Shown one piece after another: positions 1,776 through 20,000 of a DNA stretch of 64,000 nt; position 1 is the first letter of the stretch, and each line of letters starts with the position of its first letter. This stretch comes from Salpingoeca rosetta. Lineage: Eukaryota; Protista; Choanoflagellata. The notes below the pieces were generated by a model. The model was given only the letters and a program-made list of their open reading frames with translations. It was not told the origin of the DNA and did no database searches. The stretch lies in NCBI GenBank assembly GCA_033442325.1, contig JAWQFM010000030.1:442212-506211 (forward strand), written 5' to 3'. The translations under genes were made by a program, and so were the position numbers.

Positions 1776-4700
1776 CTACCGCTGGTGAAACTGGTCCGCG
1801 CCCGTGGTGGGAGGCTGCCTCACTTCGCCTCTGTTGTACATCTGCGTCAGAGCGGTTTGGATGCCTGCAGGGCAACAAAGCAAGAAGTGAGATGTGCGTT
1901 GAGTGCGTGTGTGTGTGCAGACAAGAGGGCGGGGTGGAACAGATCAGCCGGCACGAGAGGACATGCACAAAACACACAAACACACAAACACACACACACA
2001 CACACACACACACACACACACACACACACACACACACACACACACACACACACACACACACAAACACACACACACACGCACACACAGCGAGCGCTCACGT
2101 GACTGCACTTCGTGTGAAAACCGGGAGCAGATGGCAAGAGTGCGGCAGCGCGTGCAAATCTCATCTTGTTGGTGAAAAGTAAAGAAACACATCAGAGACA
2201 AAAAAGCAAGGCATGTCAGGGATGTCTAGTGCAGAGAGTGCGGCGTACGACAGCGAACTTGCACAGCACAGCACACACACACACACACGCACGCACACAC
2301 ACACACGTACATCATAACAAGACAAGCAGCAAACACACACACTCACACATCACAACACGGCAAAACCAGGCGTTCATGTCAACCATTGGATCGCATACTT
2401 GATGGCACAGAGGTGTGGTAGGCTGAGGGCGGACAAGCGTTGGTTCCGGACTTGCATCCCCGTGGGATATAGTGCATCAACGCTGATTCAAGGGGGAATG
2501 TGGTGGACAACACGGCGCTGATGAGGTACTTGCATAGAACCGAATGCCCCCCCCCGCACGCACAACAAGCGGCAGTCAAACAAACAGACAGAAACACACA
2601 CACACACACACACACACACACACACACACACACACACACACACACACACACATAAACTCTGTGGGCTTACCGCGCTCGAAATCATTGACTGTGAGGTCGG
2701 AGGGAGAGGCAGGAACAACGACGTTGCCTTCACGGATGCCACGTGACCATTTGCGAATGTCATTGTGCAAGCCGCCAAAGCACTTGTTGCAGATCCTGCA
2801 ATTGTGAGCAGGGTGACAAATAATCGTGAGATGGTGCGCAAGCACACACACACACACACACACACACACACACACACACACACACACACACACACACAAC
2901 ACACACACAAGCACACACGCACACAAGCACACAAGCACACACACACAAACACACACACACACACACACAGACACACACAGCCGCCACAATTCGAAACCTA
3001 CTTTGATGCAGAGTTTCGACCAGGACCTTCGCAGATAGGGCAGACGTGTTGAGAGGACGTGGTATCATCTGGATTGCTGCCTGCAGGCATGCGCTGCTGG
3101 TGCTGGGTGAAGAACCCAAAGCTGTTGCCGACAGGACCAGCCACGCCCATGTCCGTCAAGGGCATGCTGGCCCCAGGCACCTGTCCATATGCACCGTGGC
3201 GCAGCGCGCTGGTGGCGTTGCCTGCATGCAACCTGGCTGCCGCCGCAGCTGCCGGTGTTGGAGCGGAGGTGTCGCCTGGTGCGGAGGTTTGCAGCATGGA
3301 AAGCAGGGCGACTGGATCAACATGCCCATTCCCGAGCATGGCTGCAGGTGGGGGCGGGGCAGTGGGTGGAGGAATCCCATTTCCTGGTTGCTGCAGTTGT
3401 GGTTGTTGCTGCAAGTGTGGTTGTTGCTGCAAGTGTGGTTGCAAGTGCTGCTGTTGCTGTTGCTGCGTCAGCTGGTGTTGCAGTTCTGCTGCCTCTGTGA
3501 GAAAAGGTCGCTTCGCTGGTGGCTCATCTTGGCCTGTGCCATCGGCGTGCACGGATGCGTCCACGCCAACGCCCGAGTCTGCACCGCCGCCGTGAAGCCG
3601 CATCTGCTCCTGCTCCTCACGCAGTTGTTGCTGCAGCAGGAGCTGCTCTTGGTTGGGCGTTGGGTTGCCTGCAGGCATGCACGACAACGTAGATGTCGAG
3701 ACATACTGCATGCCCGCAGACGCAACAGACCAGCCCGAACCGGCAGGCTGACCGTGCTCCACGTGGGCATGCAGTTGCTGTTGTTGCTGTTGTTGCTGTT
3801 GTTGCTGTTGTTGCTGTTGTGTGAAATCGCCTACATGTTGCTGCTGTTGGTGGTACTGAACGTGTTCAGGTTGGCGTTGGCGGTCGTGAGCGCGGGCGCT
3901 GGGGGTTGGCATGTTGCTATCGTCGTACATTGGCTGGGACTGTGCCGTCACCACGCCCGAGAGTGTGGACGACGTGTGGGGCGGATGTGGCGGGTGCGTG
4001 GTGCCAGGCGTGGGTGGAAGCGACCACACGTCATGCGAGGCGCGCCGAAATGGATCCAGCACCGCTGATGGCGACAGTGGCATGCGGAACAACGACGGCG
4101 ATCCAATGTCCTGGCTGAGCCATGCTGACGGGCTCCCAGGTGTCATGGGTGGCTGCGAAGGCGATGTATGGCTGGGTTGTTGTTGTTGTTGTTGTTGTTG
4201 TTGTTGTTGTTGTTGTTGTTGTTGTTGTTGTTGTTGTTGTTGTTGTTGTTGTTGTTGTTGTTGTTCGAGGTATGAAGGCGGCTGTTGCGGCTGTGGCTGA
4301 TGCCGATCCTCAAGAAACCGCAGCAGCTGCTGTACCATTGCTTCCGGCGGCTGGTCGCGCTGCTGCAGCTGTTGTTGTTGCGGCGGTGTTGGTTGTTGCT
4401 GGAATTGCACAAATGCTTGTAAAACCGCACCCGCTTCGGACAAGTAGCCGGCACCATCACCTGGTTGGGCCTGCGGCTGTTGCTGTTGCGAAAAGTGATT
4501 GAGCAGGACGCGACAGCAGTGCGGCACCATCCATGATGCAACAGTGTCGTGCAACTGACCACCGAGCCAGGCACCAAACACAGCCCTCACAGTTCGCAGA
4601 TCAGCACATCCTGGGGGTGGCCCTGCGCACTGCTGCTGCTGTTGCTGCTCCTGTTGTTGCAATTGTGGTTGTTGTGGCAGTTGTTGTGGTTGCAGCTGTG

Positions 4701-17044: not shown

Positions 17045-20000
17045 TCACGGTAGCAGAACATCCACGTTTTGGAACAGCGTGGAATTGCTTGCCAGCAGCA
17101 TCTCGGTAACGATGTTGTAGAGAAGGCCTTGATTGTTCCTGATGTGAAGAAAGAATGCAACGCCTTGGTTTGGTTTGGTTGGCGCGTGGGGTTGTTCGGG
17201 GAAAGGGTGTGTGGACGCACATGTGCGCGTGGATGGCTCTTGCTGGACTGGAGAGACGAGAAGGTAAAACAGCCGGGACAACACAAGAAGGGGCCCATCC
17301 ATCCGCTGCTTGTTACTGATGCCAATGCGTCATTACGCAACTTGGTTTGCGCGTGCGCGCTGGAGGCATTTCATCACGACTGCGCCAGGCATTGGAGCGA
17401 AGAATCATCATGGAACATCGTCCATGTGCAGTCCAAAGTTGAAAGTTGGTCGTTGTTTTCACACGGATCGCCAGCAGTGGTGTTGGTGGCATGCCCGTCA
17501 TGTATGGTGTTGATCAAAGAAAGAACAGTGCGTTTGGGCATGGGGGAGCAAGAACAAGCGTGAGATGATAGTCGCCGGAGTATACGTGTCGTGTTCGTCT
17601 GTGAGCACTCGCATGCTCACTGGCATGACAGCGGGCATAGACGCAGTGTGCAGTCATCAGACTGAAACCCAGATGGAGGCGGGGGGGGGGGGAGAACCCA
17701 CCCACACACACGCACGCACGCAATTGTGGTGGTGGTACGACACGCCAGCTGTTCGCACCTCGAATGACCATGTTGGGATCGCGATGGCACGCGGCAATGG
17801 TGCGGCAGCGTGTGCACTTGGACACTGATCGACGACAAAACCACAAAGAAAAGGAAAAAGGAAGGAGGAAAAAAAAAAAAAAGGACAAAAAAAGAAAGGG
17901 AAACGAAATACGTAGCAGAAGACAGGTTCGTGATTATTTTGAGCGATGGTATGAATGGTGAAAGCGAAGGAGTGAATGGTGAGAGGATAATAACCACTTC
18001 TGGACATTGAACAATTAAAGTGGTGGGACGTCCACAAGGACACTTGCACTTTTTTGCAAGTGCGCGCAGACACAAGAGCAACAGCACATTCCAACAACCA
18101 CAAGCGTGCGCGACACGTGTGTGTGTGTGTGTGTGAAGGTGAGAAGTGGCTCTTTATGTACACTGCTGGTTGTGCAACTCACCAGAGTCTTGGTGGAAGT
18201 TTTCATCCGTGCACTGGTAGTTTTGGGAGCACCCGCGAGGCATTTCCTTGAGATCTGCGTGCATGCAAGCAATGCGAGCAGGCAAGTAGGCATAAACATG
18301 GCGGTGATGCGAAAGCAGAAGGGTCAGCGACAGTGAAGTGGGGTGAGGTGTGTATTGAGGGAGTAAGCGAAGCTCGCAGCATCAAGCAGGACTGGAATGA
18401 CGAAACAAGCTGCCAGCGTGCACACGTACACACATCGCTGAACACGCGGCAACGACTGCCCCATCTTCAACACACACACACACACACACACACACACACA
18501 CACACACACACACACGCAATACCTTCGATGAGTTGGTCAAAGGAAAACTGCCGCATGTCGTTGAGGTAAAACACGCGACGCGGGTCTCGCCGCACCCATT
18601 TGCGAATGTCATTGTACACGCCACTGCACAATTGCACAATACACACGCGCGCGCGTGTGTGTGTGAATGCGCGGTTGTAAGGTTTTGGATGAGTTTCGGG
18701 TGGCGACAGAGAGAAAGATCGTGTGTTTGGGGCAAAGGGCATTTCATGTGCGTGAGCGATAAGGTAACGACGATAAGGGTCATAAACAGGCAGCGGGCGG
18801 GCAGGCTGTCGTGTGAGCTTGCCAGCACGATAGAACACTCAAACAAGAGAAACAATAGAATGCCACGTGCCAGCTTGCATCAGGTCTCACCAGTAGCACG
18901 TGGAGCACAGCTGCCTGCTCAGCCACAAGGTTTGACGACACAAACACACAAGGCAAAGTGTGAGAATCAGTCGCATTTTACAAAACAAAACTAAACAAAT
19001 GAAGTGATGCGGGCATGTCGCTCTTAAATCCTGCAACGTCTCGTCCCCCCCTCCTCTTTGGTCATCGTTGCCTCGCGCACACGCAAAGGAATGACAACAA
19101 AGGAATGACACGCACATGCGCGGCTACATCAAACAACAACGAACGAGCACAGGTTCGCGCCCATGTTATTTCAACCCAAACACGCACAGCAAGGAAACAT
19201 ACAAACAGACAACCAAACAAACAGATAACCAAACAAACGCACACTCAAAAGAATGCATCACAGACTCAAACATTGCAACGACACATTCACGTCCACGCCA
19301 GCAAATTACAACGTACCCCCGCATGCCGTGATCGCTCTCGCGCTGACAGACGCAGCAGATGTTGCTTTCGCGCTTGGCTGGCCGTGGATAGCCAAGCAGA
19401 CGCGCAATGCGACTGGCTGGGTCTTCCACCGCCAGGCCAGCCATCATGTCCGTGCTGATCCCGGACGGGGATTCCACATCCCCGCTGTCCGGCATTCGCG
19501 GTTCAAATTGCGCGGCGGTCAGCTGTTGTGGGGACGCGTGCGAGCGTTGCATGGCGTCCATGTGTTGCTGCTGCAGTTGCGGTGATGTCGTCATCTGCAT
19601 TGAAGGCAGCTGTGGTGCGAACGTGCCAGGCTGGAAAAACGCCTGTGCAGGCTGCTGGTGGTGCTGCTGTTGCGGCTGGTGCGATGGTGATTGCTGGTGC
19701 TGCTGTTGCGGCTGCATGGCCAGTGGTGACATCTGATGGGGAATGCCACCAGACATGCCTGTGAGGGCAACGCCGCTGCTGTCAACAGGCAGCGCGCTGA
19801 AGTCAAGACCAGGGAACATGGATTGCATGGCCATTGGCGAGAGCTGGCGGCTTTGCTGCGGCTGCGGCTGCTGTTGTGGCTGCTGTTGCGGCTGCGGTTG
19901 AAAAGGGAACGCAGACATGGGTTGCATGCGCGCGTTGCCCATGTGTTGCTGGTGCTGCTGCCTTGACCTTGATGGTGATGCCGTCAGCTGCTGCGGTGAC

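Follow-up and report, generated by a model that had tools for sequence, protein, structure and literature searches.

A choanoflagellate gene family encoding a putative zinc domain with the predicted architecture of the nuclear-receptor DNA-binding domain

A 64,000-nucleotide stretch of the Salpingoeca rosetta genome (assembly GCA_033442325.1, contig JAWQFM010000030.1, positions 442,212 to 506,211 of the forward strand; hereafter the window, numbered from its first letter) was analyzed for two genes, A and B, encoding glutamine-rich (Q-rich) proteins that end in a cysteine-rich, putative zinc domain. Both genes are located on the minus strand of the window, which is intron-rich and the introns of which are full of (TG)n repeats. 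A first-pass annotation, made from the letters alone, had described A and B as a pair of paralogs from a probable choanoflagellate and had compared their domain with the DNA-binding domain (DBD) of nuclear receptors. The host was correctly recognized, as PTSG_05628 of Salpingoeca rosetta is present in the genome with 100% identity. The family bears on the origin of the nuclear-receptor DBD. Complete receptors are found in animals only, and the earlier hint outside animals consisted solely of a brief report of lone Pfam zf-C4 matches in choanoflagellates.

Genes A and B in the window

The exons of both genes are listed in Table 1. Gene B was checked against RNA using two raw RNA-seq runs (X13 and X14) and two contig sets placed on positions 16050-19500. 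In record 13 of the X4 contigs (1,090 nt, depth 197), five introns of B are removed, the pieces of the record lying at 19500-19317, 18914-18891, 18623-18523, 18254-18183, 17824-17759 and from 17379 onwards. Four joints were listed with CT..AC ends on the plus strand, corresponding to GT..AG on the minus strand, and the fifth was read from contiguous record positions, 824-922 being placed onto 18525-18623 and 923-996 onto 18183-18256. The reading frame of this contig closes with a stop codon, and all junctions proposed for gene B are confirmed by it. Unspliced contigs of lower depth over gene B were also present in X4.

Spliced gene B has the layout C-x2-C-x12-C-x2-C-x43-C-x5-C-x12-C-x2-C-R-x4-C, its first Cys codon being 19357-19355. 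As the 24-nt micro-exon holds the second CxxC, gene B without this exon would have no second CxxC. The short tail that had been assigned to the protein was retained, the protein ending 15 residues past exon 5, although the final exon encoding these residues had been missed. They contribute to the predicted basic C-terminal helix of the domain, and matching tails were found in an intronless paralog (C13:1454033) and in the paralog on contig C36. The transcript runs on as 3′ untranslated region (UTR). At the other end of the gene, KRRP and PAKRP motifs are present in the exon 1 region, and the long Q-rich open reading frame (ORF) probably contains an in-frame intron.

Gene A starts with a Q-rich ORF of 642 codons (27% Gln; window 4926-3002, minus strand). 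The sequence of exon 1 was fully present in RNA contigs of sets X4-X6 (X4: share of words 1.00). Its first Cys codon is 3042-3040 and its GT donor, in phase 2, lies at 3001. The junctions of gene A were modelled using canonical splice sites and the intron positions and phases that A shares with B and the paralogs on contigs C33 and C36. All modelled introns are GT-AG, with phases 2, 1 and 1, resulting in the layout C-x2-C-x11-C-x2-C-x45-C-x6-C-x14-C-x2-C-R-x4-C. The Cys layouts given for spliced A and B in the first-pass annotation were thereby reproduced exactly, its starts (3042 and 19357) being the first Cys codons, and the common motifs it had named, G(L/V)(H/Y)NDIRKW, PRGC and CTRCRT(L/I)AxC, are all present in both genes. 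Because exon 4 of A ends at a conserved phase-1 GT donor, gene A continues downstream. A candidate last exon with a strong polypyrimidine-CAG acceptor was predicted there; it starts LSYLMRARFAAQ, like the tail of B (L.RAR), and encodes 94 residues before the stop.

The sequence P-A-K-R-P occurs in both N-terminal regions, at codon 470 of the ORF of A (PPAKRPF) and at codon 762 of the ORF of B (LPAKRPG), and may be a nuclear localization signal-like element or a short linear motif.

Three further observations were made on gene B. X4 contigs over its 3′ region (window 16154-17381) have depths of 1240-1890, compared with 197 for the spliced coding contig, representing either a separately assembled 3′ UTR of B at higher depth or a second overlapping, more expressed transcript. 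In the last intron of B, position 17702 is A instead of C in all four runs, and an additional G follows 17680 in one X4 contig; these differences are likely to be assembly errors or strain differences. Finally, the 300 nt at 42757-43056, following the 3′ end of a kinase gene, are 100% identical to 18017-18316, comprising the PRGC exon of B and its intron flanks. This repeat adjoins a run of N (about 42130-42241) and an exact 300-nt duplicate of the kinase end (42242-42541 = 43602-43901), and appears to be a gap-associated assembly artefact, not a third gene copy.

Table 1. Exons of genes A and B (window positions) and loci of the family in the S. rosetta genome (contig:position)
Feature	Location	Strand	Description
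Gene A exon 1	3002..4926	-	Q-rich ORF, predicted start; ends VCPICEGPGRNSAS, the first CxxC
Gene A exon 2	2671..2795	-	ICNKC (second CxxC), then helix FGGLHNDIRKW; phase-1 donor
Gene A exon 3	2399..2482	-	IPRGC-x6-C, Cys5 and Cys6
Gene A exon 4	2099..2164	-	CTRCRTLAIC, Cys7, Cys8 and the non-conserved ninth Cys; phase-1 GTGAGC donor at end
Gene A candidate last exon	625..908	-	Predicted from sequence
Gene B exon 1 region	19317..22684	-	Q-rich ORF of >1,100 codons; ends ICCVCQRESDHGMRG, the first CxxC; phase-2 donor
Gene B micro-exon, 24 nt	18891..18914	-	QLCSTCY(C), second CxxC; joints 18913/19316 and 18623/18891 in X4 record 13
Gene B exon 3	18523..18623	-	GVYNDIRKW helix and linker; RNA contig
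Gene B exon 4	18183..18254	-	MPRGC-x5-C; RNA contig
Gene B exon 5	17759..17824	-	CTRCRTIAAC; RNA contig
Gene B last coding exon	17333..17379	-	VVMKCLQRARANQVA, then TAA; joint 17379/17759 in RNA contig
Family loci 1-2	Window		Genes A and B
Family locus	C11:572522
Family locus	C33:234587
Family locus	C36:199861
Family locus	C28:580811
Family locus	C7:1625263
Family locus	C18:787908/788262
Family locus	C33:318477
Family locus	C33:391227
Family locus	C25:530515
Family locus	C13:1014553-1016701		PTSG_05628, labelled 'hypothetical protein'
Family locus	C13:1454033		Intronless; entire domain in one ORF ending in stop

The family in S. rosetta and its relatives

Searches of the genome itself covered the 55.4-Mb S. 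rosetta assembly. A degenerate DNA pattern for NDIRKW gave five matches, compared with none for the reversed control, and from this pattern and protein searches the family was found to comprise at least 13 loci (Table 1). Genes A and B are paralogous, as first described, but do not form a pair on their own. In the family alignment, the eight core Cys are invariant in all members that cover them; taken with the result of the NDIRKW pattern, this argues that the domain is not a product of chance. The nine Cys originally reported are present in A and B, but the ninth is not conserved across the family, being absent from the C36 and C11 paralogs and from a Hartaetosiga protein. The conserved motifs are [YF]-x-G-[LV]-[YH]-N-D-I-[RK]-K-W, P-R-G-C and C-x-R-C-R. 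Between Cys3 and Cys4, the two residues differ among paralogs (NK, ST, TR, PV, GT, NV, GC, GV, GI, SR, KS), as does the residue two places after Cys4; the rest of the first helix (helix 1) is nearly invariant.

In all five paralogs examined, the end of "exon 4" is the same phase-1 GT donor. Comparison of the regions downstream of exon 4 among five paralogs by tblastn yielded no conserved last exon. Following a motif-scored scan of these downstream regions, the true last exon of B was recovered together with a good candidate for the C36 paralog and the tentative candidate for A. In the annotated model of PTSG_05628, Cys1 to Cys6 are present and the model ends without the C-x-R-C-R exon (last zinc pair); its 3′ end is probably mis-annotated. 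The member at C25:530515-530682 is divergent, the first CxxC being absent from the ORF piece read. Its domain is followed by a long Q-rich region in one 680-codon ORF, the opposite of the order in A and B.

A 40-position profile of exon 2 was searched against 1.84 billion representative proteins, resulting in five matches: a protein of Hartaetosiga balthica, PTSG_05628 and three ENA proteins. The Hartaetosiga relative is a complete protein of 180 residues (EukProt EP00055 P007641), and its transcript encodes the domain contiguously. Two of the three ENA proteins were traced to contigs of Tara Oceans metagenome assemblies, which hold relatives resembling the C11-type and C33-type paralogs; the subfamilies thus seem to predate a species split. 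A single exon encodes both the PRGC and the CNRCR part in the Tara Oceans relative of the C11-type paralog, so that not all members have an intron between exons 3 and 4. No homologous proteins were found for the N-terminal ORFs of A and B.

Sequence comparison and predicted fold

For the Pfam, AlphaFold2 (AF2) and representative searches, the intronless C13 paralog and the Hartaetosiga protein were used as stand-ins for the spliced domains of A and B. Single exons, including those of gene A, gave no Pfam match. No Pfam match was obtained with the family domain for GATA, LIM, MYND, PHD or zf-4CXXC_R1. A weak match to DZR_2 (PF18912; E 0.17-0.49) was far below the cut-off, and in a language-model feature search zf-MYND clusters were among the nearest named neighbors (score 0.87, to be taken as a lead only). 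Neither N-terminal ORF of A and B contains a Pfam domain. The B protein ends 15 residues after exon 5 and the intronless paralog stops after the domain, leaving the family without a ligand-binding domain (PF00104), as had been proposed.

When compared with the nuclear-receptor DBD (Pfam PF00105, zf-C4, a double treble-clef zinc finger of C4 type), the family has in common eight Cys in what are predicted to be two sequential C4 modules, the C-x2-C pairs, helices predicted to start after Cys3 and after Cys7, the C-x5-C opening module 2 and, in many members, C-x2-C-R followed by a further Cys. The predicted helical, basic C-terminal extension likewise has a counterpart in TR and VDR. The canonical zf-C4 spacing, C-x2-C-x13-C-x2-C-x15-17-C-x5-C-x9-C-x2-C, is matched by the family at the C-x2-C pairs and C-x5-C only. 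Loop 1 has 11-12 residues in the family and 13 in receptors. The linker has 39-45 residues, with two extra short helices predicted, and 15-17 in receptors, which bears out the expanded inter-finger linker of the first-pass annotation. Module 2 opens with x5-6, and its second loop is x5-14, compared with 9 residues in receptors. The P-box signature C-[EG]-[GS]-C-K-x-F-F-[KR]-R is replaced by C-x-x-C-[YF]-x-G-[LV]-[YH]-N-D-I-R-K-W, so that a recognition helix of the form Y-x-G-[LV]-Y-NDIRKW stands against (E/G)-x-C-K-x-FF(K/R)R in receptors. Further differences from nuclear receptors are the C-terminal position of the domain, the absence of a ligand-binding domain and of a zf-C4 hidden Markov model (HMM) match, and the non-animal host.

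Other zinc domains resemble the family in part. GATA and LIM domains, which also belong to the glucocorticoid-receptor-like fold, similarly contain a treble-clef module, C-x2-C...C-x2-C, followed by a helix, and the C-x2-C-x-G-L-Y of the family recalls the C-N-A-C-G-L-Y of GATA fingers. GATA differs in having one module with a loop of 17-18 residues, and LIM in having two modules without the perpendicular helix pair. Double zinc ribbons (DZR_2, ComF-type) and small archaeal zinc proteins have two successive Cys4 sites, as the family does, but fold as ribbons without long helices.

The Pfam zf-C4 domain alone, in choanoflagellate proteins, was reported by Lopez-Escardo et al. (2019; PMC6792448), who concluded that zf-C4 predates animals and that the ligand-binding domain is animal-specific, a conclusion repeated in PMC8942334. 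The general view of nuclear receptors as animal-specific, adopted in the first-pass annotation, accordingly applies to the complete receptor and not to the DBD, and the present family represents a new, expanded variant, not the first case. An ORF of 886 codons and low complexity at C23:207872-208033 (minus strand) of S. rosetta gave a match to PF00105 of 17.5 bits (E 0.006), below the gathering cut-off of 21.1 bits. It contains the receptor-like sequences CTYCIKFFLTAI and CFGCLYQRCLDVGI, matches SF-1, VDR and RXR chains weakly, and probably belongs to the lone zf-C4 type described in PMC6792448. Such proteins have in common with the family a receptor-type double zinc finger (predicted in the family), the absence of a ligand-binding domain and a long low-complexity chain; the receptor-like signatures of the C23 protein are missing from the family. 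Using hhalign, no similarity was found between the family profile and the C23 protein, which argues that the family is a distinct and more numerous group, one that would have escaped domain censuses. The family motifs were not mentioned in any paper found in a literature search. The region on contig C31 that matched PF00105 at 24.1 bits is not rich in Cys, and this match appears to be spurious.

Structures were predicted with AF2. The alignment was built from unaltered translations of the intronless paralog, the Hartaetosiga protein, PTSG_05628, long ORF pieces of paralogs and single exons of A, B, C11, C33 and C36. For the intronless paralog, a predicted local distance difference test score (pLDDT) of 95.3 and a predicted template modelling score (pTM) of 0.86 were obtained; for the Hartaetosiga protein, which is 28% identical to it, these were 89.4 and 0.79. 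The five models of each run were close in confidence. Both proteins were predicted with the same order of elements: a short hairpin (Cys1, Cys2), a 17-residue helix right after Cys3, two short linker helices, the Cys5-Cys6 loop, a helix right after Cys7 and a long basic C-terminal helix.

In a Foldseek search of the PDB with the intronless model, 47 of the top 50 rows were nuclear-receptor DBDs, with probabilities up to 0.99, template modelling (TM) scores by target of 0.65-0.67 and a root mean square deviation (rmsd) of about 3 Å. In an independent alignment to 48,161 PDB representatives, rank 1 was shared by RXR, GR and ERR-gamma (Z 6.7), and receptors filled 10 of the 14 top rows; 68 of 72 residues of GR were aligned at 2.3 Å and 18% identity. 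Re-alignment of the Foldseek hits gave Z 7.4 for TR-beta, with 86 residues over model residues 1-116, and Z 7.0 for FXR, at 2.2 Å and 24% identity. As the TR-beta alignment spans model residues 1-116, the C-terminal helix superposes on the extension helix of TR and VDR. Overall, receptor matches to the intronless model had Z 6.7-7.4 and rmsd 2.2-3.0 Å over 66-78 of about 75 core residues. In the ESM Atlas a zf-C4 cluster came first (TM 0.57), and bacterial double-zinc-ribbon and ComF clusters were listed with TM by query of 0.40-0.45. Receptor DBDs were thus the best match to the predicted fold in three libraries, and no PHD, LIM, GATA, MYND, RING or 4CXXC fold was among the top 50 structural rows.

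The receptor alignments begin at model residue 1-3, with 13-24% identity. Those to unrelated structures (MCM N-terminal and FF domains) mostly have a later start, in many cases at residue 16-23, and identities of 3-14%. In the GR alignment, model residues 1-98 are placed onto GR 438-509. We take these ranges to put Cys1 on GR Cys440 and Cys8 on GR Cys495 (rat GR numbering), and the modelled alignment is consistent with Cys-for-Cys equivalence. Two sequential C4 modules were predicted by AF2 and are implied by the receptor alignment from residue 1 at 17-24% identity. In the predicted models, the elements of the receptor fold are present, namely two zinc modules and, behind each, a helix, with crosswise packing of the two helices.

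Interpretation and alternatives

The family is read here as choanoflagellate transcription factors without a ligand-binding domain, whose DBD would have the nuclear-receptor architecture with an enlarged inter-module linker; a probability of roughly 60% is assigned to this reading. Each protein would consist of a long, Gln-rich and probably disordered chain ending in a zinc domain of about 105-115 residues. Judging from the models, two zinc ions would be bound by this domain through two C4 modules in sequence, each leading into an α-helix right after its third Cys, and the basic helix behind them would complete the layout of a receptor DBD with its C-terminal extension. A helical insert of roughly 25 residues between helix 1 and the second module would be the difference from receptors. 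The proteins would most probably act as sequence-specific transcription factors. Helix 1 (Y-x-G-[LV]-Y-N-D-I-R-K-W) would lie in the DNA major groove, and the variable residues between Cys3 and Cys4 and two places after Cys4, at the places of the receptor P-box, could set target specificity; variation at Cys3-Cys4 beside a nearly invariant helix 1 is the pattern expected of specificity-determining P-box residues. The basic C-terminal helix may add backbone or minor-groove contacts, and the Q-rich region may act in activation. In short, we infer zinc binding, DNA binding and a nuclear role and, at a lower grade, homology with nuclear receptors.

Several results weigh against this interpretation. 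At the level of sequence, the full-length domains of the intronless paralog and the Hartaetosiga protein gave no credible Pfam match and none for zf-C4 at E ≤ 10, which also upholds the initial description of the domain as unrecognized. No family locus was matched in a PF00105 HMM scan of the whole genome, and the family profile detected no nuclear-receptor chain at E ≤ 10, and no other convincing chain, in the PDB. Helix 1 carries an acidic Asp and is without the receptor signature KGFF(K/R)R. At the level of structure, the AF2 alignment was shallow (27 rows, mostly exon fragments; effective number of sequences, Neff, 3.1), the E-values of the Foldseek receptor rows were 0.3-3, and all Z values are below 8, where the tool warns of a common arrangement. 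With the Hartaetosiga model, receptors reached Z 5.0-5.4, tied with helical bundles of the MCM N-terminal and FF types (Z 5-6). Finally, raw runs X13 and X14 had no real coverage of gene B; alignments were partial and repeat-driven, so that gene B was not detectably expressed in those two runs.

The alternative that survives best is a convergent double zinc module for protein-protein or RNA binding, comparable to LIM or MYND, the proteins then being scaffolds or co-regulators. The lack of sequence similarity to nuclear receptors, the nearby zf-MYND clusters of the language-model search, the moderate structural Z values and a helix 1 with a conserved Asn-Asp pair and few basic residues would all be accounted for. 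Against it, LIM, MYND, PHD and RING structures were missing from the top 50 of every fold search, and the receptor match extends over the two zinc modules with their helices and over the C-terminal extension helix. This last helix is strongly basic, and the Q-rich architecture and PAKRP motifs fit transcription factors. Convergence of this kind is considered unlikely.

Less probable again is that the AF2 models are over-confident copies of a memorized receptor fold, the true Cys pairing being interleaved, as in ZZ, RING or PHD domains, or that of a double zinc ribbon. The shallow, fragmentary alignment speaks for such an error, as do the weak DZR_2 match, the double-zinc-ribbon and ComF clusters in the Atlas list and the first half of the domain, which by eye resembles the start of a ZZ domain (C-x2-C-x-G-P...C-x2-C). 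It is opposed by the agreement in order of secondary structure between two members of 28% identity, both predicted at high pLDDT, by the close confidence of the five models per run and by helix starts immediately behind Cys3 and Cys7, the arrangement expected of treble-clef modules.

A third alternative, in which the small exons would be ORF fragments arising by chance and no spliced domain would exist in vivo, could draw on the modelled junctions of gene A and on runs X13 and X14, but is refuted for gene B by the RNA contig joining all its exons and is made highly improbable in general by the intronless paralog, with the same domain in one ORF closed by a stop, and the contiguous Hartaetosiga transcript.

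Within the preferred reading of a receptor-like DBD, the resemblance to nuclear receptors may or may not be homology. A true, highly diverged homolog of the receptor DBD, already diversified in the choanoflagellate-animal ancestor and with the Cys3-Cys4 residues as a P-box-like half-site code, is possible but held only tentatively. If so, the animal receptor would have arisen by fusing one such zinc domain, itself without a ligand-binding domain, to a ligand-binding domain.

Beside the lone zf-C4 proteins, the closest living relatives of animals thus contain a separate, expressed multi-gene family, missed by HMMs and predicted to share the complete architecture of the receptor DBD and its C-terminal extension helix. 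As S. rosetta is a genetically tractable species, direct tests can be made of the zinc content, structure and DNA motifs of the domain and of knock-out phenotypes. If the domain binds DNA, the family would represent a lineage-expanded class of transcription factors overlooked by domain-based censuses of choanoflagellate regulators.

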